A DNA stretch of 64,000 bases from Macrostomum lignano. Its lineage: Eukaryota. Every line of letters begins with the position of its first letter. The first letter of the stretch is position 1. The stretch spans positions 248,001 through 312,000 of the forward strand of contig NIVC01000808.1 of the NCBI GenBank assembly GCA_002269645.1, read 5' to 3'. Below, in pieces: positions 4,492-29,900 of the stretch. Below the pieces are notes generated by a model that was not told the DNA's origin, searched no databases, and saw only the letters and a list, made by a program, of their open reading frames with translations. The position numbers were made by a program, and so were the translations under genes.

Positions 4492-4975
4492 ATGATCAGC
4501 TCAATCGATGAAGCCAAATGTGTTAAACAAGAGAAGCCGTCTGAGACAGAAGAAGAAATTGATGAAGCGTCGTTTCACACGGCCAACTGCCAGCCTCCTG
4601 ACAGCTCCTGCGACGGCGGCGGCGGATGGAGCCGGCTGAGCCTGCACGAGGATGAGGCTGGCGAGGAGAAGCTCATCTATTCAGATGCTGAGGACAATGA
4701 AGAGGAGCTGGCTGCGGCTTCTGCTCGGAGGAAGCGGACGGCGCTGCGGCCCACGGGTGAGACAGGCGCTAGGACAGGCACTAAGACAGACGCTAGGACA
4801 GGCACTAAGACAGACACTAAGACAGGCAGACAGACAGACAGACAGATAGACAGGCAGACACTAAGATAAACAGGCAGACAGACACACACACAGACAGATA
4901 CACACACAGACAGACACACACACAGACAGACACACACATAGACAGACAGGCAGACAGACAGACAGACAAACAGAC

Positions 4976-5110: not shown

Positions 5111-8100
5111 CGGACAGACGGACAGACAGACAGATTTATGGACGGACGGACAGGCGGACAGACAGACAGACAGACAGATAGATGGACGGACGGACGGACA
5201 GGCGGACAGACAGACAGATAGATAGATGGACGGACGGACGGACAGGCGAACAGACAGACAGATAGATAGATGGACGGACGGACGGACAGGCGGACAGACA
5301 GACAGATAGATAGATGGACGGACGGACAGGCGGACAGACAGACAGATAGATAGATGGACGGACAGACAAACAGGAGCAGAACGGAAATGCATGAACACTT
5401 AACTTTCGCTATTCTTACCGAAGTCTTGCCCTTGCATCACGGCCCTCGCATACCCCAATACAATGACCTAAATATTCGTCCCTTTGCAGAAAACGGCGCA
5501 CCCCCAGCCGGTGTCGAGCCGGCGCCAAAAAAGAAGCGCTCCCGCGCCTGGGGCCTGACGAAACCGGCCGTTGTGCCCGTTGTCATCACCGCTAGCGTTA
5601 TCAATGTAAATCGAAAGTATAATATACTCCTACTTTCCTACTGTAATCGGCTAGCATAGTAGCAAGTAGTGTTTGCACTGATAAAATTAATGCATCTATG
5701 TAATTGTATTTCTAGGAAATGCTGCCGAATCAGACAAAGCCGCCAGCGACTGACTGCAAAGACTCGCCGCCCGTCGTCGATTCCATCGACGTCGACGTCG
5801 CCAACAAAGACGAAGGCGAAGCCGCATCGGAGCTTGAGGACGGCGAAGTGTCGCCTACCAATAACAACAGTAATAGCAATCACAATAACTCTATGACTAG
5901 CCAGAAGAAATGGTTGCCCACTGTACTCGCCGAATCACGTGATCAAACGGACAGACCGAAAGATCAGTTGGGCACTCAGCCTGCCACCGCTTCTGCTGAT
6001 GCTGAACAGTCGCTAGGCCGACTGAGTCAATTTCATAGGACCGTCACTCGGCCGTGCATTTTCTGGTGCCTGGCGAAGCCTGCGGATCTCTCAGAAAAAT
6101 TGAAGAAGGATGTGAGAATGTTTAGTCTCTAATGTGTACATTATTTCATGAGCTATGACTGACTGGATTCTTGTATGACCTCATCAGCTATGACTGACTA
6201 GATTCTTGTATGACCTCATCAGCTATGACTGACTGGATTCTTATATGACCTCATCAGCTATGACTGACTGGATTCTTATATGACCTCATCAGCTATGACT
6301 GACTGGATTCTTGTATGACCTCATCATCTATGACTGACTAGATTCTTGTATGACCTTATCAGCTTTAACTGATTGGATTCTTGTATGACCTCATCAGCTA
6401 TGACAGACTGTATTCTTGTTGGACTCGCTGCGAGCTGCCCTTCGGCGAGAGTGGGAGCGGATCCCCCAGGATGTGCTGCGTGCCGCAGCCCGGTCTGTGA
6501 GACGTCGTCTTCGTGCTGTCATTCGCAACAGGGGCGGCTACATTGAGTGATACTTTGTGCCATAGACACTGACAGGTCCACCAACATCTCTGTAAAATTT
6601 CAACATAATATCTTTTAGCATACCATAGGTGGCCCATAATATGTGTTGTTGCAGGATTTTTGACGCACCCTGTATGACCTCATCAGCTATGACTGACTGG
6701 ATTCTTGTATGACCCCATCATCTGACTGACTAGATTCTTGTATGACCTCATCATCTATGACTGACTGGATTCTTGTATGACCTCATCAGCTATGACTGAC
6801 TGGATTCTTGTATGACCTCATCATCTGACTGACTAGATTCTTGTATGACCTCATCAGCTATGATCAACTGGATTCTTGTATGACCTTATCAGCTATGACT
6901 GATTCCAGTTTCTCAATAAGCCGTACAAATTCAGCCATCCGCTCCATCCTGGCACCGCAGCTGGCGGCTCCGCTTGCCCCGCCGCCGCCGCCGGACCCCT
7001 ACGAGTCGGTCTTCGACGTGGCCGCCCTGGAGGCCGCCGCTGGCGTCGAGCAGCTCCGACGCGACCGTCGCCGGCTGCACCCGAACTCGCGCCCGTTCCC
7101 GCCGGACTTCGAGGCCACCGGCGGCCGGCTGCCGCTGCCACTCGACCATTTTTCAGGCGTCGACATTGCCGACAATGGTCGGAGACGCCGACAACAGGCT
7201 CCGGCAGTGCTGCATCATTTTCCGCGCTGTATGAAGCCGTTCGAAGCGGATGAGTTGCATCAAGAATTGAGCAGTAGCAATTGCATGCCGAGGGCTGCAT
7301 CCGAGGATGATGAGGCTGCGGTGAAGCTGAACTGGCTGGACGACAGCAGCCGCTGGCCGGACGCTCTGCACAAGTTGCGCCGACAGCTGGCCGCCCTGTT
7401 GAAGGTGCCGTTCGCTCGAGCCGCTGTTGCTAGGCTGGAAAGACCGTCTGACTGCACCGACTGGTGGTGAGTTAGAGGTAGAGTTTGATGTGATTTCTGG
7501 TACAGTTAGAGGGAGACTTTCATGTCTCCCTGGCAGGAAATGTTTCACAGGGGTCCAGTAGAGTGTGTAGGATTTGAGTAGGGTGTCTGATAGAGTTGTA
7601 GCCTAGTGGTCAGAGCCTTGGTCTCACGACTTTGGAAGTCGGGGGTTCGATTCATGGTCCCACTCGAAACAATTTGTGTCCTTGAGCAAGACACTTAACT
7701 TTGCATTGCTTCAGTTCAGCCAGCTGTAAAATGGGTGCCAGCATTAGCTGGGGTAATTGAGGCTGTGTGTGGCGACCGCCCCCCAGTCCTTGGACTGAGC
7801 AGCCGTACGCAGCCTTCAGATGCGCCACGCAATAGCTGCGGCTGAGCTGTCGGTTGCGCATCTGCCCAATTGGGGCAGGTGTAATCAATCATTATTTTGA
7901 TTGCTGGTAGATTAGAGCGGACAGTTGAATAGGGCGTTTGGTTTGGCAGTCTCTAAAAGTTGGGTATAGTGTATGGTAGAGTCTCGTGGAGTTGGATTGG
8001 TTGTCTGGTTGACTGGCGAGTTGGTTGTCTGGTAGAGTGGCGAGTTGGTTGTCTGGTAGAGTGGCGATTTGGTTGTCTGGTAGAGTGGCGAGTTGGGTGT

Positions 8101-8490
8101 CTGGTAGAGTGGCGAGTTGGTTAGTTACCCGTACTCCTACCGCATGGTGTACTCGCGCTCCACCGCAGGCACCAGTCGGCAACATCAAAGGACAGCGGCG
8201 ATGCCGGCAGCAGCCCCGCGACCCCACTGGCCGCCCTGGTGTTCGTCGGCGGCCCGCCCAGGCCGGTGGAATTTCGCAGTCGCCAGCGTCAGAGTCGCGG
8301 GCAGCAGCGGAGGCTGCACCTGGCGGCGACGCGGCACGGTGGCCTGCTGGTGGCCGAAGGCTCGGCCGTCAGCGACTGGGCCGTCCGGCTGCCTGCCTTC
8401 GCTGCTGACGGGGACTCGCGTGCTGCTGCTGCTGCTGATCAGGCAGCCCAAGCACTGTTTATGCTGCTTTTTGTGCGCTCAGAGGAGCAG
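4492..8490 (+). CDS. Multi-exon nuclear protein with acidic N-terminus, NLS, RSB-like motif and degenerate AlkB (ALKBH2/3-like) domain
   Basis: Predicted exons 4492-4756, 5490-5605, 5716-6111, 6961-7466, 8169-8490; all GT-AG and phase-compatible, 535 codons. The C-terminal half aligns by eye with ALKBH3 (VLHHFPRCMKPFEADELHQEL; WPDALHKLRRQL..F..; DWWHQS; RHGGLLVAEG..SDWAVRLP). Terminal exon uncertain; candidate 12067-12084 (NESRV*). Confidence 0.7.
4760..5372. repeat. Compound (GACA)n/(GATA)n/(GGAC)n microsatellite in intron
   Basis: Read directly. Confidence 0.95.
6151..6905. repeat. 35-bp minisatellite (TGACCTCATCAGCTATGACTGACTGGATTCTTGTA) interrupted by a transposon fragment
   Basis: Tandem copies at 6151-6418 and 6673-6905. 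Confidence 0.93.
6419..6674 (+). mobile_element. 3' stump of a Tc1/mariner-superfamily DNA transposon
   Basis: 6419-6550 encodes LDSLRAALRREWERIPQDVLRAAARSVRRRLRAVIRNRGGYIE*, the typical Tc1/mariner transposase C-terminus. The fragment ends ...GACGCACCCTG+TA (reverse complement TA|CAGGGTG), a right TIR plus TA target. Confidence 0.85.
7593..7890 (+). mobile_element. tRNA-derived CORE-SINE (copy 1), intronic
   Basis: A box TAGCCTAGTGG, B box GGTTCGATTC, then TGTGTCCTTGAGCAAGACACTTAAC...CTGTAAAATGGG resembling the MIR/CORE domain; second copy at 18265-18561. Confidence 0.85.
8000..8125. repeat. 24-bp tandem repeat (GGCGAGTTGGTTGTCTGGTAGAGT), about 5 copies
   Basis: Read directly. Confidence 0.85.
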
Positions 8491-8530
8491 GTGAGTGAGC
8501 TGGCTGATTGACAGCTCGAATCAATCATTT

Positions 8531-9524
8531 GGCTGTCTGTCTGTTTTGTGTTACTGATGCTGTCTGTCTGTTTTTTGTTACTGAGGCTGTCTGTTTTGTG
8601 TTACTGATGCTGTCTGTCTGTTTTGTGTTACTGAGGCTGTCTGTCTGTTTTGTGTTACTGAGGCTGTCTGTCTGTTTTGTGTTACAGATGCTGTCTGTCT
8701 GTTTTGTGTTACAGAGGCTGTCTGTCTGTTTTTTGTTACTGAGGCTGTCTGTCTGTTTTGTGTTACAGATGCTGTCTGTCTGTTTTGTGTTACTGATGCT
8801 GTCTGTCTGTTTTGTGTTACTGAGGCTGTCTGTCTGTTTTTTGTTACAGATGCTGTCTGTCTGTTTTGTGTTACAGATGCTGTCTGTCTGTTTTGTGTTA
8901 CTGAGGCTGTCTGTCTGTTTTTTGTTACTGAGGCTGTCTGTCTGTTTTGTGTTACTGATGCTGTCTGTCTGTTTTGTGTTACTGAGGCTGTCTGTCTGTT
9001 TTGTGTTACTGAGGCTGTCTGTCTGTTTTGTGTTACTGATGCTGTCTGTCTGTTTTGTGTTACTGAGGCTGTCTGTTTTGTGTTACTGAGGCTGTCTGTC
9101 TGTTTTTTGTTACTGAGGCTGTCTGTTTTGTGTTACTGATGCTGTCTGTCTGTTTTGTGTTACTGAGGCTGTCTGTCTGTTTTCTGTTACAGAGGCTGTC
9201 TGTCTGTTTTTTGTTACTGAGGCTGTCTGTCTGTTTTGTGTTACAGATGCTGTCTGCTTTGTGTTACTGATGCTGTCTGTATGTTTTGTGTTCTGAGGCT
9301 GTCTGTCTGTTTTCTGTTACTGATGCTGTCTGCTTTGTGTTACTGAGGCTGTCTGCTTTGTGTTACAGATGCTGTCTGCTTTGTGTTACTGAGGCTGTCT
9401 GTCTGTTTTCTGTTACTGATGCTGTCTGCTTTGTGTTACTGAGGCTGTCTGCTTTGTGTTACAGATGCTGTCTGCTTTGTGTTACTGAGGCTGTCTGTCT
9501 GTTTTCTGTTACTGATGCTGTTCT
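8531..9524. repeat. ~27-bp minisatellite (CTGTCTGTTTTGTGTTACTGAGGCTGT)
   Basis: Read directly; starts 40 bp after donor 8491. Confidence 0.95.
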
Positions 9525-9911
9525 GTTAATTAAAATAATTTCATTTTTAGTTAGTGAGTGACCTTTTTAGTTAGTGAGTAATAGTAGATTTCACGCCCCT
9601 GGAAATCTAGGCACGACATTCGCTAGGATTTCCCCGCGGAATTTTTCATAAACTTCTCTCTGTTATCTATCTGTTTGCTAGGTCATTAATTTGTCTCTAC
9701 CAGCTGACTTTGTGCTTATTTTATAATGCGCTTTTTCTGCACAGTGCACTCCCTGCCCTATCAGGGGGTCACTTTCACATTTGAGTAAACAAAAACATTT
9801 ATGTACAGCTGAGAATCTCACTGCACTTTTCCTGGTCACCTGTGCGGCTGGGCGGCTGGCTTATACTCTCTTACTTAGTTGATTGTGCCAGTCTGCGCCT
9901 GTGTCTACTGT

Positions 9912-11830
9912 CCTCTCCCCTTTCTCTCCCTTCCTCTCTCCCCTTTCTCTCCCTTCCTCTCTCCCCTTTCTCTCCCTTCCTCTCTCCCCTTTCTCTCCCT
10001 TCCTCTCTCCCCTTTCTCTCCCTTCCTCTCTCCCTTTCTCTCCCTTCCTCTCTCCCCTTTCTCTCCCTTCCTCTCTCCCCTTTCTCTCCCTTCCTCTCTC
10101 CCCTTTCTCTCCCTTCCTCTCTCCCCTTTCTCTCCCTTCCTCTCTCCCCTTTCTCTCCCTTCCTCTCTCCCCTTTCTCTCCCTTCCTCTCTCCCCTTTCT
10201 CTCCCTTCCTCTCTCCCCTTTCTCTCCCTTCCTCTCTCCCCTTTCTCTCCCTTCCTCTCTCCCCTTTCTCTCCCTTCCTCTCTCCCCTTTCTCTCCCTTC
10301 CTCTCTCCCCTTTCTCTCCCTTCCTCTCTCCCCTTTCTCTCCCTTCCTCTCTCCCCTTTCTCTCCCTTCCTCTCTCCCCTTTCTCTCCCTTCCTCTCTCC
10401 CCTTTCTCTCCCTTCCTCTCTCCCCTTTCTCTCCCTTCCTCTCTCCCCTTTCTCTCCCTTCCTCTCTCCCCTTTCTCCCTCCCCTTTCTCTCCCTTCCTC
10501 TCTCCCCTTTCTCTCCCTTCCTCTCTCCCCTTTCTCTCCCTTCCTCTCTCCCCTTTCTCTCCCTTCCTCTCTCCCCTTTCTCTCCCTTCCTCTCTCCCCT
10601 TTCTCTCCCTTTCTCCCTCCCCTTTCTCTCCCTTCCTCTCTCCCCTTTCTCTCCCTTCCTCTCTCCCCTTTCTCCCTCCCCTTTCTCTCCCTTCCTCTCT
10701 CCCCTTTCTCCCTCCCCTTTCTCTCCCTTCCTCTCTCCCCTTTCTCTCCCTTCCTCTCTCCCCTTTCTCCCTCCCCTTTCTCTCCCTTCCTCTCTCCCCT
10801 TTCTTCCTCCCCTTTCTCTCCCTTCCTCTCTCCCCTTTCTCTCCCTTCCTCTCTCCCCTTTCTCTCCCTTCCTCTCTCCCCTTTCTCTCCCTTCCTCTCT
10901 CCCCTTTCTCTCCCTTCCTCTCTCCCCTTTCTCTCCCTTTCTCCCTCCCCTTTCTCTCCCTTCCTCTCTCCCCTTTCTCTCCCTTCCTCTCTCCCCTTTC
11001 TCCCTCCCCTTTCTCTCCCTTCCTCTCTCCCCTTTCTCCCTCCCCTTTCTCTCCCTTCCTCTCTCCCCTTTCTCTCCCTTCCTCTCTCCCCTTTCTCCCT
11101 CCCCTTTCTCTCCCTTCCTCTCTCCCCTTTCTTCCTCCCCTTTCTCTCCCTTCCTCTCTCCCCTTTCTCTCCGTTCCTCTCTCCCCTTTCTCTCCCTTCC
11201 TCTCTCCCCTTTCTCTCCGTTCCTCTCTCCCCTTTCTCTCCCTTCCTCTCTCCCCTTTCTCTCCGTTCCTCTCTCCCCTTTCTTTCCCTTCCTCTCTCCC
11301 CTTTCTCTCCCTTCCTCTCTCCCCCTTTCTCTCCCTTCCTCCCTCCCCTTTCTCTCCCTTCCTCTCTCCCCTTTCTCTCCCTTCCTCTCTCCCCTTTCTC
11401 CCTCCCCTTTCTCTCCCTTCCTCTCTCCCCTTTCTCTCCCTTCCTCTCTCCCCTTTCTCCCTCCCCTTTCTCTCCCTTCCTCTCTCCCCTTTCTTCCTCC
11501 CCTTTCTCTCCCTTCCTCTCTCCCCTTTCTCTCCGTTCCTCTCTCCCCTTTCTCTCCCTTCCTCTCTCCCCTTTCTCTCCGTTCCTCTCTCCCCTTTCTC
11601 TCCCTTCCTCTCTCCCCTTTCTCTCCGTTCCTCTCTCCCCTTTCTTTCCCTTCCTCTCTCCCCTTTCTCTCCCTTCCTCTCTCCCCCTTTCTCTCCCTTC
11701 CTCCCTCCCCTTTCTCTCCCTCCCCTTTCTCTCCCTTCCTCTCTCCCCTTTCTCTCCCTTCCTCTCTCCCCTTTCTCTCCCTTTCTCCCTCCCCCTTTCT
11801 CTCCCTTCCTCTACCCCTTTCTTCCCTTCC
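9912..11830. repeat. ~1.9-kb polypyrimidine minisatellite, 23-bp unit (TTCCTCTCTCCCCTTTCTCTCCC)
   Basis: Read directly; essentially only C/T on the + strand; followed by (TTA)n at about 11926-11985. Confidence 0.97.
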
Positions 11831-11929
11831 TTATTTATCCCCGGTACCTTAATCCTCCCATACGCTTCCAGTCTTCAACCTCAACTTAATTTTCTGTTTT
11901 ATCTTTTCGTTCAATATACTCGTATTATA

Positions 11930-11985
<56 letters not shown>

Positions 11986-12399
11986 GGCTATTATTTCACA
12001 AAAATACCGCTTAAAAGAGAAATAAATCATTTTTCACTTTCTCCCGCTGCTTCAATTATTTTGCAGAATGAGAGTCGAGTTTAAGCCGGAGAGTACAAAC
12101 TGAGGACGAGCCTGCTGCAATCAATGCATTTCTACCTGTCTATTGACCAGTCAGCCGCCGCTGTGTGCACTCGCGCTTTTCATGTTTAGTTATAATTGCG
12201 TCGCGCCTGTTATCCGCGAGCCGGTCTGGCGCCCCAATCACTAGAAATTGGGCAATTATATTTTTTTGTCTTGTTGTTTCGATTGAAAATTTTCTTCTCA
12301 ATTCCTTTTCCATTTTTTTCCTTTGAGCCTTTTTTCCCTATGGCCATTCTAGAAGCAAAAGGAACGGTGGCTTTAATAAGTCTGTTGTTTGTTTGAAAA

Positions 12400-17776: not shown

Positions 17777-18920
17777 ATGGTACTCGACGACGAGATGTCT
17801 CAGCAAGTCACGCTCAACGTATCCATGCAGCAGTGCTTAGCCCAGGCCAACTCGGAGGGGCGCCTGATTTCTGGGTTTAAAAACGTGTTCACCTTTCTGG
17901 AGAACAAGTTAGTTGCGTATCCATGCATGTTTGAATATTTAATTTTCACCGAAGCAAATAGAAATCCTAAACTCATTACTATAAGTACTCGTATAACTAA
18001 TACTTCAGAAACTCGAAGTTTTAATTGTCCCACATTTTCTTTGGATTACAGCAGCAGCGAACTAATCCTGTTCTGCATCCTGCCAGAGAATCTGTGGAAC
18101 GATTCTCGCCGCAAGGCAGCCTTCAGACTGGTCGCGTCGTTCTGCGACGAGCGCCGGGTGCGAATGATCAAGGTGCGAATTTATTGTTTTATAGTTCGTT
18201 TAGGGCACTAGAGAACCTCTTCAGTAGCATTCAAGTATTTATATTAGTATAATTAATAGTATTAATTGATTGCTCTAACCTGCCCTAATTGGGCCAGATG
18301 TGCAACCGACAGCTCAGCCGCAGCTATTGCGCGGCGCATCTGAAGGCTGCGTACGGCTGTTCAGTCCAAGGACTGGGGGGTCGCCACACACACCCTCAAT
18401 TACCCCAGCTAATGCTGGCACCCATTTTACAGCTGGGTGAGCTGAAGCAATGCAGAGTTAAGTGTCTTGCTCAAGGACACAGATTGTTTCAGTAGGATCG
18501 GGAATCAAACCCCCGACTTCCAAGTCGTGAGACCGACTCTTTACCCACTGGGCTACAACTCCTATATATAGTATATTATTATACTATTATGTAAAACCAT
18601 AAGAGGGCTCACACCCAAGAGGGTGTACACTCGCGCTCTCTTCATCAGTGTCAGCGCTGATGAAGTTGGAATTCGCTAATCCCCCCCACGAAAACTCTGC
18701 TCAGGTTGACGACGACCAGTTGGTCAGAAAAATCATTGAGAGGACCAGCAGCTCCCAACTGAGCGCCGGCAAGGCGGACCTGTCCTTCGAGTGCGTCCTG
18801 GTGCTGCGCCGCTGGCCAGATCAGCCCTGCTGCGACGCCGAACTGTTGCGTCATCACGCCAGGTTCCCCGGCCACGATTTCGACAACCTGCCTCTGGTCC
18901 GGCTGCTGGAGTCGTCCTGA
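17777..18920 (+). CDS. GADD45: GADD45-like protein (L7Ae/L30e/Gadd45 fold)
   Basis: Exons 17777-17907, 18052-18172 and about 18649/18666-18920. Motif order CLAQANSEGRLISG / ELILFCIL / FRLVASFCDERRVRMIK / FECVLV / LPLVRL matches GADD45. The last acceptor has a phase ambiguity. Confidence 0.78.
18265..18561 (-). mobile_element. tRNA-derived CORE-SINE (copy 2) in GADD45 intron
   Basis: Reverse-complement match to 7593-7890 along its whole length. Confidence 0.85.
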
Positions 18921-20914: not shown

Positions 20915-22196
20915 ATGGACTTCCCGTTGGTGCCAGCAAGTCAGTCGGGATTCCTCATCATGCTGGCCGCCGATGACAGCAACAATTTCACGGCCTGCTG
21001 CCAGCAGACGGTAAGCTTTCTGATTTATAAAAAATATTTCTAAGAGACTTTACTGTCTTTTCACATTCTTTCTTGGAACAACCTTTCTCGTGATTCTCCT
21101 ATAGGGAAATCCTTTTGGGGATTCCCCTTTAAGGAAATCCTTTTGGGGGATTCTCCTTTAGGAAAATCCTTTTGGGGGATTCTCATTTAGGGAAATTCTT
21201 TTGAGGGATTCCCCTTTAGGGAAATCCTCTTGGGGATTCTCCTTTAGGGAAATCCTTTTGGGGGATTCTCATTTAGGGAAATTCTTTTGAGGGATTCCCC
21301 TTTAGGGAAATCCTTTTGGGGATTCCCCTTTAAGGAAATCCTTTTGGGGGATTCTCCTTTAAGAAAATCAACTGCAGGGATACTCTTTTAGGGGAATCCT
21401 TGATAGGGTTCTATTCTGAAGTAATTTATTTTAGTTCTTTTGTAAAAATCTAAGACGGGATTCAATCTACAGTTAGGAAGATTATTTTTGAACTAAAGTT
21501 ATTTTTGAACTTTTGAACTAGCAAGGGAATTAGTTTTTGCAGATAGATAACTGGACCTTGCAGTCACAACAGGCCGACCCGCTGCCTCCATTGGCCGAAA
21601 TGGGCGGCAGCAGCTGCATTCCCTACGCCACCGAGGAGCTGGAGAGCTCGGAGCCGCGTCTTGATCTCGATTTTATTATCGACCACTTGCCGACGTCGAC
21701 GGAGCCACTGGCGACGCATCAGCCAGCATCAACTGTCGACTCAACCGGACTGCAGTGCATCCTGCACTACCTGCAGGGCGCTATCAGCGACTCGACGCCG
21801 GCGCCAACTCCGGCGCAGGCACCGACATTGCCAGCAAAAACGTCCGAGAGCGTGTCGAAAAGTGGACAACGACGACAGTCGATCGCTTCGACGACGACGG
21901 CCGTCGCCGCTCTGTACGCTGCACCAGGCGCCGTGCACGCTTGCCCGCTGAAGGGCTGCGACAAGGCCTACAGCAAGAGCTCCCACCTGAAAGCTCACCT
22001 TCGAGCTCACACTGGGGAAAAGCCGTACAGATGCGACTGGCCCGGCTGTGACTGGCGATTCTCCAGGTCGGACGAGCTGACCAGGCACCGTCTGAAGCAC
22101 ACCGGCCTGAGGCCCTACCGCTGCCAGCTGTGCCAGCGGGCTTTCAGCCGCTCCGATCATCTGGCGCTGCATTTGCGGAAGCACAAGCAGATCTGA
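20915..22196 (+). CDS. KLF: Kruppel-like factor (three C-terminal C2H2 zinc fingers)
   Basis: Exon 1 20915-21010 (MDFPLV...CCQQT|GTAAG) joins in phase 0 to 21543-22196. Fingers [28 protein letters not shown] / [19 protein letters not shown] / [21 protein letters not shown] give the KLF signature. Paralogue not resolved. Confidence 0.9.
21100..21410. repeat. ~30-bp internally palindromic minisatellite (GGGAAATCCTTTTGGGGGATTCTCCTTTA) in KLF intron
   Basis: About 10 copies; GGAAATCC and GGATTCCC halves are near-complementary. Confidence 0.88.
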
Positions 22197-22562: not shown

Positions 22563-23485
22563 AGGGAATGGTGCTTGACTGGGTGCTGCGGACTGCTCTT
22601 CCTACCGACGACGACGGCTTTCTGCTGCGGCGACGCGTGGGTCGACGTCAACCGGAGAAGCGGCTCAGCGTGCTTGGCTACGCCGACGACCTCGCCCTGC
22701 TGTCCTCGACCGTCGAGGGTGCCCAACGGCAGCTGGACAGGCTAGTTGCCGTTGCGGCGAGCGTCGGCCTGGTGGTCAACACGCAGAAGACCGTTGTGCT
22801 CTGCGTGCCGGACGACATCGAGGCTGCAATATTCTGCCGAGGCGCTGACAGGCAGGCGACGCGAGCTCCCGCGATGTCAGCAGTTCGTCTACCTCGGCGG
22901 TCTGGTTCCAGACGCTCGCGAGGACCTCCGACGCTGCTGCGGGCTTGCCTGGGCTGCCTTTCGTTCTGTGAGGGCAGTCCTGCAGTCCGAGGCCCTACCG
23001 GACCGCCAGAGGGCGGCGCTGTTCCAGGCGGTAATCGAGACCGTCCTGCTCTACAACGCCGAGACCTGGACGCTGACGGACTCACTCGAACAGCAAGTCG
23101 ATGCGGCGCATGCTGGCCTGCTGCGCGCCGCCTTCAACATCGGCGTCGAGCGAGTCAACAACGCGGCACTCTATCGCCGCGCTGGCCTGCCACGTCCAAG
23201 CGATCTACTGTGCCGTCGGCGACTCCAGCTCGCAGGCCATCTCATCCGCGCCGAGTCGTACTGCCCACAGCCGGTGCAGGAGGTGCTGCTGCTCACGCTG
23301 CAGGCACCCTACCGGCGAGGTCAAGCGCGAACTCGGCGTTACGTCGACTGTCTGCTGGCTGACGCCGGCGCCCCGGACACTGCCGGTGGCGCAGCCTTTG
23401 TTCGCGCCCAAGCCATGAAGCGCGCCCTGTGACGCTGACTTTTGCCATCCTGACAGCGTATTTTCTATTTTGATGTTGTTGTTGT
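22563..23485 (+). mobile_element. 5'-truncated non-LTR retrotransposon (RTE-like), frameshifted RT C-terminus
   Basis: YADD motif, then YLG, ETWTL and RRRLQLAGHL; frameshift near 22860; (GTT)n tail; 12-bp TSD TGATTTTAACCT at 22551-22562 and 23486-23497. Confidence 0.92.
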
Positions 23486-26378: not shown

Positions 26379-26927
26379 NNNNNNNNNNNNNNNNNNNNNN
26401 NNNNNNNNNNNNNNNNNNNNNNNNNNNNNNNNNNNNNNNNNNNNNNNNNNNNNNNNNNNNNNNNNNNNNNNNNNNNNNNNNNNNNNNNNNNNNNNNNNNN
26501 NNNNNNNNNNNNNNNNNNNNNNNNNNNNNNNNNNNNNNNNNNNNNNNNNNNNNNNNNNNNNNNNNNNNNNNNNNNNNNNNNNNNNNNNNNNNNNNNNNNN
26601 NNNNNNNNNNNNNNNNNNNNNNNNNNNNNNNNNNNNNNNNNNNNNNNNNNNNNNNNNNNNNNNNNNNNNNNNNNNNNNNNNNNNNNNNNNNNNNNNNNNN
26701 NNNNNNNNNNNNNNNNNNNNNNNNNNNNNNNNNNNNNNNNNNNNNNNNNNNNNNNNNNNNNNNNNNNNNNNNNNNNNNNNNNNNNNNNNNNNNNNNNNNN
26801 NNNNNNNNNNNNNNNNNNNNNNNNNNNNNNNNNNNNNNNNNNNNNNNNNNNNNNNNNNNNNNNNNNNNNNNNNNNNNNNNNNNNNNNNNNNNNNNNNNNN
26901 NNNNNNNNNNNNNNNNNNNNNNNNNNN
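26379..26927. other. Assembly gap (549 N)
   Basis: Run of N preceded by a poly-G tract. Confidence 1.
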
Positions 26928-29900
26928 AACAGCAGAGCTGCCGACCTGGCTTCCCGAGCGCTTCAAGCCTCTGGCGCAGGGGCTCGGCGGATCCGAGGAT
27001 TCGAGCACCGGCCCAGGCTGAACCCGGCCGTGCCTCCGGTAGCGCAGCCGCTCCGCCGTATTCCACTCAGCATTAAGGACAAGGTCCAGGCGGAGATCGA
27101 CCAGCTGTTGGCAGACGACATCGTCGAGGAGATCCAAGCTTCCGAGTGGATTTCGAACCTGGTGATCGTCCCGAAGCCCGAAGGTAAAATCAGAATCTGC
27201 AACGACCTCAGGTGTCCAAACAAGGCTATAGTGCCGGATAAGCAGCCGCTGCCAACTTTCGAGGAGCTGACGACGGAGTTCAAGGGCTCGACCGTGTTCA
27301 CTAAGCTCGATTTGAACTCGTCGTACCTGCAGCTGGAACTGGCGGAAGACCGGCGGGACCTAACGGCCTTCATCACGGAGAAAGGCCTTTACCGGTACAA
27401 GCGCGTCTGCTACGGCCTTAACAGCGCTCCAGCAGCCTTTCAGAAGGTGCTTAGTAAGATTATCCACGGCTGTTTGGGGACGCTGCACTACATTGATGAT
27501 ATCGTTGTGCATGCTGCCAACGAGACGGAGCACCGGCGGCGGCTCACGGCAGTGCTGGACCGGCCTGCTCGCCATGGCGTAACGCTTAACACCGCCAAGT
27601 GCCAGTGGGCTGCAGAGTCCGTGCAGTTTCTGGGCTACATCGTCTCGGCGAGAGGCCTTCAGCCGATGCAGTCCAATGTGGAAGCCATCGAAGCGGTGCC
27701 GGAGCCTCAGAACACCGAGGCGGTGGCCTCATTTCTCGGAATGGTAAAGTTTTACTCGAACTTCCTACACAACCTATCCGACATCGCCGAGCCGCTGCTG
27801 CAGCTACTTCGCAAGGACCAGCCTTGGAACTGGACAGCGGACTGCCAGAAGGCCTTTTGGAGGCTTAAGAAAATGGTAGTGTCTCCAACGTGCCTGCGAT
27901 TCTTCTGTCCCGACGACAAGATAATCGTGGCCTGCGACAGCTCTGCGCACGCTCTGGGTGCCGTGTTGATGCAAGAAGACAGCGCTGGCGTTCTCAAGCC
28001 AGTTGCTTTCGCGTCGAGGACTCTGTCGGCGACCGAGCGCAAGTACTCCGCGTCAGAAAGAGAGGCGCTGGCATGTATCTTCGCCTGCGAGCGTTGGCAC
28101 TACTTCCTGTTCGGCCGGAGATTCGAACTGCACACCGATCACCAGGCTCTGACGACGCTGCTGACGGCTCAAGGCAGCGGCCACCGACCTTTGCGGCTGC
28201 ACCGATGGGCCGACCGCCTGCTCGCGTACGACTTCCAAGTGTGCCACGTTCCCGGCAAGAAGAACATCGTGCCCGACTTTTTGTCACGCCATGGCGCTTT
28301 CGGAGAAGATTGCGCTGAAGATCCGACCGAGCACCAGGTGAATGCCGTATTGTTATCGGGCGCGTTGGAGGTTGTCAGCGCAAGCGAGTTGGCCGAGGCA
28401 TCCCTGCAGGACCCGGTAATAAGCGAAGTGATAGCTCTGACGCTCCAGGGGTGGCCGAGCTCCATCAAGCATCTGCGGTCGGAGTTGCAGCCGTTCTGGA
28501 GGATCCGAATGCAGCTGACGGCCTGGAATGACGGCAAGTGCCGGCACTCGAGCGGTGATCCCCGCATCCCTGAGGGAGAAGACGCTGCAGCTGGCACACT
28601 TCGGACACCTCGGCGTGAGCAGAATGAAGCAGCACTGTCGGGACGCCGTCTGGTGGCCGCAAATCGACCAGCACATTGAGGAGTTCGTGCGGCACTGTGA
28701 GGCCTGTCTGCTAAGCGAGAAGAATTTCAAGCCATCCAAGACGGTTCTGACCCCGACAAAGTGGCCGACGCGTCCATGGGAGGAGCTTCAGCTAGACATC
28801 TTTGGGGAGCTGCACTCGGCTCCGAACTCCTGCCGCTTCATCCTGGTGCTGTACGACTTGCACTCAAAGTGGCCGGAGGCTGCCTGCATGTCAACCATCA
28901 CAAGCGCTGATGTCATCGACGCCTTGACAACGTGGTTTAGTCGTTGGGGGCTGCCGAAGAGTATCAACACAGATGGAGGGCCTCAGTTCGTGTCCGGTGA
29001 TTTCGAGGATTTTCTCCGGCGCTGTGGCATCCAGCATCGGCAGTCGCCGCACTACCACCCTCAGGGCAACGCGGCGGTGGAGCGTTTCAACCGGTTTCTC
29101 AAGGACGGCCTCAAGACGCACTTGGAGGAGGGCTATGACTTTAAGGACGCGGTGAAGGCACTGCTGTGGTCGTACAGAGCCACCCCGCATGCACTGACTG
29201 GAGTTTCGCCGGCGGAGCTGATGACAGGCCGGAAGATCAGCACTCCCCTGACAGCCCTACAGCCAAGGACGGCAGCGCGGCACAGACTGGCGGCCGGCAT
29301 CAAGCGGAAACAGCAGCGAGTTTTCAACCAGCTCAACTCGACCAGGAGACCCCCGCCGACTTTCATGGTCGGCGACTGGGTGCAGGTGAAGCGGCCGTTC
29401 GCCCGGGGCAAGCTAAGCAGCCGCCTGTCCGAGCCTCGTGAGATCTCCCGGATCGCGAGCGCCACCACCGTCATCCTCAATGATGGCTCCCGCTGGCACG
29501 TCGACAATTGTGTTCGAGTGCCGCGGCCCGCCGGAGCGCTGCCACACTGGCCCGCGACGGCTTCCAGCGCGGCGGCGATTCCGGCGGAGGCGGCGGCGGA
29601 GGCGGCAGAGCCAGCGCGGCCGCAGCAGACAGCCCAGACTGCGGTTCGAGGGAGCACGAGGACGCGAGCGCCTCCACAGTGGTACGGGGAAATTGTGACG
29701 CATTAACTGATTTATTAGTGACTGCTAACTGACTTTCTCACGAACGATGTGCATTTGAAGCCAAATTAGTTGTTCTCAGACTAATATTGCGATTTAATGC
29801 TCAGTGAAATACTCAGTGTGATGATCTACTTTTATTCCTTCGATGCTCAGTCATGCGCTTTTATTCCTTGTTCAATATTTCGACGAATTCGGTTTTCGCG

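Follow-up and report, generated by a model that had tools for sequence, protein, structure and literature searches.

Can an AlkB-type domain be kept by selection after it has lost the residues that bind its cofactors? The question is raised by a locus of the flatworm Macrostomum lignano lying in a 64,000-nucleotide stretch of DNA (the window; positions 248,001 to 312,000 of the forward strand of contig NIVC01000808.1, assembly GCA_002269645.1). An earlier reading of the DNA letters alone (the original prediction) had assigned positions 7207 to 8480 of the window to an AlkB-family pseudo-dioxygenase resembling the demethylase ALKBH3 in four collinear blocks. We found that this segment belongs to a functional six-exon gene whose product lacks the catalytic residues of ALKBH3. 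On balance, we favor the reading that the C-terminal domain of this product is a catalytically dead domain derived from ALKBH3, as targeted sequence comparisons suggest.

Structure of the gene and its product

The gene is BOX15_Mlig028660g3, located on the plus strand, with six exons, all joined at GT-AG sites, and a product of 540 amino acids. The protein assembled from the exons of the window is identical to PAA76612.1, which is labeled "hypothetical protein, partial" in GenBank, and the gene region with 22 kb around it matches contig NIVC01000808.1 base for base. The exon model was guided by tblastn with the annotated GenBank products of the paralogous loci and by GT-AG boundaries. Only a portion of exon 4, together with intron 4 and the greater part of exon 5, falls within the range 7207 to 8480. 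The three 5' exons and the last exon had been missed, hence also the context of a larger protein, of which the domain under study is the C-terminal part (about residues 320 to 540).

Exon 1 (4492 to 4756; residues 1 to 88) starts with the ATG at 4492, encodes an acidic, low-complexity N terminus, and includes the basic patch ARRKRTA (4723 to 4743), which resembles a nuclear localization signal (NLS). It is followed by exon 2 (5490 to 5605; residues 89 to 127) and exon 3 (5716 to 6111; residues 128 to 259). Exon 4 (6961 to 7466; residues 260 to 428) leads from a Pro/Ala linker into the N-terminal half of the ALKBH3-like region and encodes block 1, VLHHFPRCMKPFEADELHQEL (7207 to 7269), block 2, WPDALHKLRRQL (7354 to 7389), and, at its end, FARAAVARLERPSDCTDWW (7411 to 7466). 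Block 3, SDCTDWW/H (7447 to 8172; the slash marks the junction), spans intron 4 (7467 to 8168), which has the donor GTGAGT at 7467 and the acceptor cag at 8166 to 8168. Exon 5 (8169 to 8490; residues 428 to 535) encodes HQS in place of HxD (8170 to 8178), PLAALVFVGGPPRPVEFRSRQ (8224 to 8286), block 4, HGGLLVAEGSAVSDWAVRLP, with Val for the distal His (8335 to 8394), and then an Ala-rich insert and the hydrophobic C-terminal strand LFMLLFVR, which extends to 8478. Exon 6 (12067 to 12084) supplies NESRV and the TAA stop and is present in all three copies of the gene described below; it is separated from exon 5 by the 3.6-kb, minisatellite-filled intron 5. All of these features are on the plus strand, and the four ALKBH3-like blocks were encoded where the original prediction had placed them. 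The DWW/HQS junction is also that of the GenBank products of all three copies.

An upstream open reading frame (ORF) start, MTDSS... at 6895, was rejected as the start of exon 4, which begins at 6961. This sequence belongs to an intronic 35-bp minisatellite, an array that happens to be open in the frame of exon 4 and imitates coding sequence.

Similarity to ALKBH3

ALKBH3 (human ABH3; PDB 2IUW, 8JNK, and 9NCZ) is an Fe(II)/2-oxoglutarate (2OG)-dependent demethylase of m1A and m3C in single-stranded DNA and RNA. The M. lignano domain shares with it the collinear order and spacing of motifs over about 160 residues, the first His of the metal-binding triad, the DW before this His, a G-x-x-R-x-F-E-x-R hairpin, and a location at the extreme C terminus. 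In the best block, 12 of 20 residues are identical (HGTLLIMEGATQADWQHRVP). The collinear register that had been proposed for the four blocks was reproduced by three independent aligners (phmmer, hhalign, and MAFFT). In contrast to ALKBH3, the domain lacks about 16 residues of the substrate lid (the PYTYS region, which includes Tyr143), has a 13-residue Ala-rich insert before the last strand, differs in length by 5 to 6 residues near the HxD site, and follows an unrelated extension of 320 residues.

When ALKBH3 was taken as a targeted hypothesis, several partly independent statistics exceeded composition-matched shuffles. A hidden Markov model (HMM) built from 18 vertebrate ALKBH3 sequences gave 9.4 bits (P = 3.2e-5), a score reached by 0 of 5,000 shuffles, the best of which gave 5.3. 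Alignment to ALKBH3 with hhalign covered 158 collinear columns (query 83 to 250 with target 89 to 266; P = 0.0025) and scored 29.4, compared with a shuffle mean of 14.2 ± 2.7 and maximum of 28.1, so that none of 1,000 shuffles reached the real score (P < 1e-3). With block 4 anchored, the match of the 160 upstream residues to the upstream ALKBH3 profile was equaled by 24 of 4,000 shuffles (P = 0.006), and a looser, local version of this test gave a P of about 0.05. In the MAFFT alignment, 33 of the 105 invariant ALKBH3 columns were matched, compared to 19.9 ± 4.1 in 400 shuffles (maximum, 31; z = 3.2). A rough combined estimate, which rests on these shuffling nulls, is 3e-5 × 0.006 × about 2.5e4 families, or about 0.005, and favors true remote homology. 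The order and spacing of the noncatalytic structural motifs are likewise collinear with those of ALKBH3, although as targeted evidence this is weak. Taken together, the comparisons make AlkB ancestry of the domain somewhat probable.

The alternative that survives best is that this is a fast-evolving protein without known homologues, in which the likeness to ALKBH3 is coincidental. The gene would still be real and constrained, but its C-terminal part might not be a double-stranded beta-helix (DSBH) and could be partly disordered or have some other small fold. We consider this a possibility to be taken seriously, if not a probable one, and a number of results speak for it and weigh against ALKBH3 ancestry. 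Unlike ALKBH3, the protein had no Pfam match to 2OG-FeII_Oxy_2 (PF13532), the AlkB-family profile, even at an E value of ≤10. An exhaustive HMMER scan of 1.84 billion representative proteins (E ≤ 1e-3) found neither an AlkB protein nor any homologue from a species other than M. lignano. Apart from one spurious repeat protein, it returned just copies of this same gene, which is thus restricted to M. lignano in the libraries searched. In phmmer searches of the PDB, ALKBH3 was the sole match to the first query (E = 0.99), while with the core alone ALKBH3 (E = 0.62 and 1.0) was outranked by herpesvirus gL (E = 0.47) and accompanied by thiazole kinase (E = 1.7), unrelated chains with similar scores. 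Database-wide, the similarity is at noise level, and AlkB homology is significant solely as a targeted hypothesis. Nearly all of the HMM score came from one 27-residue block around HGGLLVAEGSAVSDWAVRLP, and the overall identity in the MAFFT alignment (44) did not differ from that of shuffles (41 ± 5.5). The Ala/Arg/Pro-rich composition of the GC-rich exons 4 and 5 (66 to 70% GC) also promotes spurious matches. The pairing of FMLLFVR with the RxNxTxR motif (RVNLTFR in ALKBH3), which the original prediction had included, found no statistical support: 15,326 of 20,000 shuffles did at least as well, and MAFFT picked SR[A8]QALFM for this position. Finally, no intron position is shared with a vertebrate ALKBH3 gene (quail). 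Because intron turnover is expected over the evolutionary distance between flatworms and vertebrates, this last mismatch is uninformative rather than contrary.

Structure prediction adds to the same side of the balance. AlphaFold2 run on the single sequence gave a pLDDT of 38 and no fold; it produced no useful model, since with no homologues known for the gene there is no alignment depth to build on. When, as a one-sided check, AlphaFold2 was fed the MAFFT alignment with ALKBH3 sequences, an input that makes the result circular by construction, the model was mediocre (pLDDT, 59.5; pTM, 0.59). A Foldseek search with this circular model gave ALKBH2 and ALKBH3 as the top matches (TM score of about 0.5; root mean square deviation of 5 to 6 Å). 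This outcome neither confirms nor refutes a DSBH. Retention of the DSBH/AlkB fold in the C-terminal domain, which had been inferred together with the loss of Fe(II)/2OG chemistry, is thus presumed rather than shown, while the loss of the chemistry holds in every alignment.

Against coincidence stand the targeted statistics given above (P = 3e-5, <1e-3, and 0.006; z = 3.2). The matches also fall in the right order and spacing and prefer positions that are invariant in ALKBH3, and the domain ends about 10 residues past the last strand, as ALKBH3 does. These observations lead us to favor descent from an ALKBH3-type AlkB DSBH domain, followed by strong divergence. Such a descendant would have kept, in order and spacing, the helix that follows the first strand, the W-x-x-x-L-x-x-L helix, F-x(14)-D-x-x-DW-H, the [L]-x-F-x-G-x-x-R-x-x-E-F-R hairpin, HG-x-LL-x-x-EG-x-x-x-DW-x-x-R-x-P, and, about 10 residues before the C terminus, a last hydrophobic strand. 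It would have lost the equivalents of Asp193 and His257, the 2OG contacts N179 and Y181, the arginines of RxNxTxR, and some of the nucleotide-recognition lid.

That the domain diverged instead within some other 2OG-oxygenase or cupin-like family, outside the ALKBH3 lineage, is very unlikely. Foldseek with the circular model scored ALKBH7 similarly to ALKBH2 and ALKBH3, and the catalytic motifs that discriminate subfamilies are gone. However, block 4, HGGLLVAEGSAVSDWAVRLP, is identical at 12 of 20 positions to ALKBH3 specifically, and ALKBH3 was the sole family recovered by sequence.

Conservation of the gene among three copies

Three copies of the gene are assembled: that of the window, Mlig019945g2 (NIVC01000882.1), and Mlig008114g3 (NIVC01000158.1). 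GenBank products are annotated at all three loci, and the flanks are syntenic, including an upstream gene for a Ras-type GTPase and a downstream gene of 176 amino acids. The copies may be paralogues on duplicated genome segments or uncollapsed haplotypes of the assembly. No second copy of the gene was found within the window.

All three copies keep the six exons, every GT-AG site, and the open frame (540 or 539 codons). Their coding sequences differ by 13 synonymous and 12 nonsynonymous changes and one in-frame indel. Pairwise omega was between 0.25 and 0.35 (binomial P, 0.006 to 0.025) and in the C-terminal half between 0.14 and 0.34, values that, like all copy comparisons here, come from within one species and have a shallow time depth. 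Between the copy of the window and Mlig019945g2, a single indel event (3 bp, in frame) was found in 1.6 kb of coding sequence, compared to 17 indel events in about 2 kb of nonrepeat introns and flanks (about 0.85 per 100 bp). From this noncoding density, about 14 coding indels would be expected. Substitutions between the same two copies amounted to 0.9% in exons and 1.6 to 3.7% in nonrepeat introns and flanks, and their fourth introns are 98.4% identical.

Because the three copies keep exons, splice sites, and frame with few indels, the gene is functional and selectively maintained. The opposite reading, a decaying AlkB pseudogene that stays open merely since its DNA is GC rich, could draw on the loss of all of the catalytic residues and on the long ORFs that such DNA gives in several frames (8117 to 8494 and 8025 to 8408 overlap exon 5 in other frames). 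It is nonetheless ruled out by the 540 codons in six exons with all GT-AG sites kept in three copies, the one in-frame indel where about 14 were expected, an omega of about 0.3, and the annotated products at all three loci; we regard it as exceedingly improbable. Purifying selection and an intact reading frame despite the loss of catalytic residues, the pattern of a pseudoenzyme, are seen here on the scale of a single species.

Several database entries proved to be versions of this gene. Four UniRef proteins of M. lignano were considered as diverged homologues and rejected; each is a frame-hopping model of this very gene, taken from an older assembly, and adds nothing independent to the evidence. 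The names that UniRef gives to same-gene proteins (Transposase, PHD-type, SNF2_N, and Os06g...) are mutually inconsistent and were disregarded. In one older-assembly model, A0A1I8F580 (651 amino acids), one gene copy runs directly into a second N-terminal half, an arrangement that suggests a tandem duplicate or a misassembly in the older assembly.

Loss of the catalytic residues

The iron-binding facial triad of ALKBH3 consists of H191, D193, and H257 (PMC10816986). In the M. lignano protein, H191 corresponds to the retained H429 in the register given by phmmer, hhalign, and MAFFT, which is that of the original prediction and in which HxD reads HQS, with D193 replaced by S431. MAFFT also offers, and prefers, an alternative register with a five-residue insert, in which the motif reads TSK and the Asp position is K; neither register has Asp. 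At the position of H257 stands V500, within the contiguous exon of block 4; the predicted change of the distal His to Val was confirmed. The residues N179 and Y181 are replaced by A and L, as LCNLYR of ALKBH3 pairs with AVARLE in both hhalign and MAFFT. For the C-terminal tail, one register gives FMLLFVR and the other R...QALFM; an intact RxNxTxR is found in neither.

Under every alignment, then, the Asp of HxD, the distal His, N-x-Y, and an intact RxNxTxR are all missing. Neither the His-x-Asp...His triad that marks AlkB membership (PF13532) nor the contacts to 2OG made by N-x-Y (DSBH strand I) and RxNxTxR (last strand) were found. Because the metal ligands, the 2OG contacts, and the arginine pattern are lost, the domain is predicted to be incapable of Fe(II)/2OG-dependent oxidative demethylation. 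Splicing is unable to restore the ligands, since the Val lies within the contiguous exon of block 4 and the annotated junction gives HQS. The GT at 7464 that had been pointed out as an alternative donor does exist and would yield DWH, with one Trp fewer, but it is unused in the models of the three copies.

An active AlkB-type dioxygenase, in which HxD...H is restored through the use of another donor, acceptor, or exon, or in which noncanonical ligands take over, is largely refuted and scarcely credible. The GT at 7464 and the retained His429 are in its favor. Against it, this donor would take away just a single Trp (DWH-Q-S), S (or, in the MAFFT register, K) occupies the place of the Asp, Val replaces the distal His in an uninterrupted exon, the N-x-Y and Arg contacts to 2OG are missing too, and the products of all three loci read DWWHQS...DWAVRLP.

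As it shows no significant AlkB profile match, no facial triad, and no 2OG contacts, the protein should not be filed as an AlkB enzyme; it is at most a degenerate derivative of that family. Inactive members of other 2OG-oxygenase families are known. The JmjC protein JARID2 is catalytically inactive; with its Fe/2OG ligands gone, its DSBH scaffold has stayed under selection and serves in binding or scaffolding. Inactive members such as JARID2 are conserved across phyla, and their folds and partners have been demonstrated. In contrast, the protein described here would be of the AlkB rather than the JmjC type, comes from one species, and has a fold that is only presumed.

The N-terminal half and an RSB-like motif

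Residues 1 to 259 are acidic and of low complexity (D plus E, 19%). No Pfam domain was found in this half, apart from a weak match to Pinin_SDK_memA (E = 0.28; residues 219 to 258). UniRef applies the name "Acinus" to N-terminal fragments of the protein, which we took as a lead. Exon 2 encodes the NLS-like PKKKRSR (5525 to 5545; residues 101 to 107), which is recognized solely by the classical K-K/R-x-K/R pattern and would give nuclear localization.

In exon 3, the sequence FHRTVTRPCIFW (6031 to 6066; residues 233 to 244; wider region, 6013 to 6111) resembles the RSB motif found in Acinus and in Pinin (PF16294; PDB 4A8X), which reads FRKTKGTPCIYW or FRKTKxxPCIYW. We compared residues 227 to 259 with the RSB sequence of fly Acinus from 4A8X_B, LFRKTKGTPCIYWLPLT. 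Shared with the Acinus/Pinin motif are F, T, P-C-I, the aromatic residue, and W, followed by E-K at the same spacing, and, as in Pinin, the region around the motif is disordered. The differences are that LPLT of the RSB is CLAK here, the exposed K-T-K/R is R-T-V, and no RRM or SAP domain stands beside the motif. In a targeted search, an RSB profile built from 120 PF16294 fragments scored 8.1 bits against FHRTVTRPCIFW (P = 1.3e-4; 3 of 20,000 shuffles). Pfam did not report PF16294 for the 540-residue protein, and searching the PDB with the N-terminal half yielded a noise match to a TetR regulator only, with none to 4A8X. In the ASAP and PSAP complexes, the RSB motif binds RNPS1 and SAP18 (PMC5441173). 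The motif of the M. lignano protein is possibly a docking site for RNPS1-SAP18, a lead rather than a finding.

Possible role of the protein

If the preferred reading of a dead ALKBH3-derived domain is correct, its jelly-roll with the shortened substrate lid would bind neither Fe(II) nor 2OG. Its mode of action would be the binding of nucleic acid or of a partner protein, not oxidation. PKKKRSR in the disordered N-terminal half would bring the protein into the nucleus, and FHRTVTRPCIFW possibly tethers it to RNPS1-SAP18. We propose on this basis that the protein may be a nuclear, nonenzymatic adaptor.

A bolder form of this proposal is that an eraser domain has turned into a noncatalytic reader or adaptor, with the dead ALKBH3-type domain still recognizing nucleic acid (single-stranded or alkylated/methylated) or a partner of ALKBH3, while the RSB-like motif recruits RNPS1-SAP18. 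We consider this unlikely. If true, it would represent a third, flatworm-specific ASAP/PSAP-like complex that couples the recognition of base modifications to the control of splicing, the exon junction complex, or nonsense-mediated decay.

GenBank already includes the gene under the label hypothetical protein, and literature searches turned up no account of it or of flatworm AlkB pseudoenzymes. If the homology holds, the protein would be a rare AlkB-family pseudoenzyme, a repair/RNA-demethylase scaffold that has been selected after losing all of its cofactor ligands and that now sits in a new domain architecture. If instead the resemblance arose by chance, this is one more uncharacterized, species-restricted flatworm gene. 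The weight of the case is limited by the single species and the marginal homology. M. lignano permits RNA interference and transgenesis, so the function of the gene is testable and would inform how eraser enzymes become binding modules.

Repeats and neighboring genes in the window

Introns 3 to 5 of the gene are dominated by minisatellites with units of 35, 27, 23, and 24 bp. They occupy 6146 to 6419 and 6671 to 6902 in intron 3, 7997 to 8122 in intron 4 (the 24-bp unit), and 8532 to 9526 and 9913 to 11831 in intron 5. Intron lengths differ strongly between gene copies (849 versus 1,089 bp for intron 3; 3,576 versus 2,447 bp for intron 5).

Intron 4 also holds one copy of an interspersed repeat of about 300 bp (about 7593 to 7891, plus strand), a second copy of which lies at 18267 to 18561 on the minus strand; the two are 89.7% identical. 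The repeat has a tRNA-like head, GTAGCCTAGTGG...GGTTCGATTC, and is probably a short interspersed nuclear element. Scans of the window with ARAGORN (for tRNAs) and Rfam gave nothing and did not call this repeat.

Upstream of the gene, a single-exon ORF on the plus strand (458 to 1129) encodes a Ras/Rab-type small GTPase (Pfam Ras, E = 2.9e-51) with a CCN prenylation-like tail. Downstream, a plus-strand ORF at 21537 to 22196 encodes, in its C-terminal part, three C2H2 zinc fingers whose arrangement is KLF/Sp-like (Pfam zf-C2H2, E = 5e-17), and a putative reverse-transcriptase-like ORF with a YADD motif is found at 22568 to 23432. The pol region of a Ty3/gypsy-type retrotransposon, with reverse transcriptase, RNase H, and integrase identified by Pfam, occupies 27030 to 29706 on the plus strand and directly follows an assembly gap (a run of N at about 26380 to 26990).

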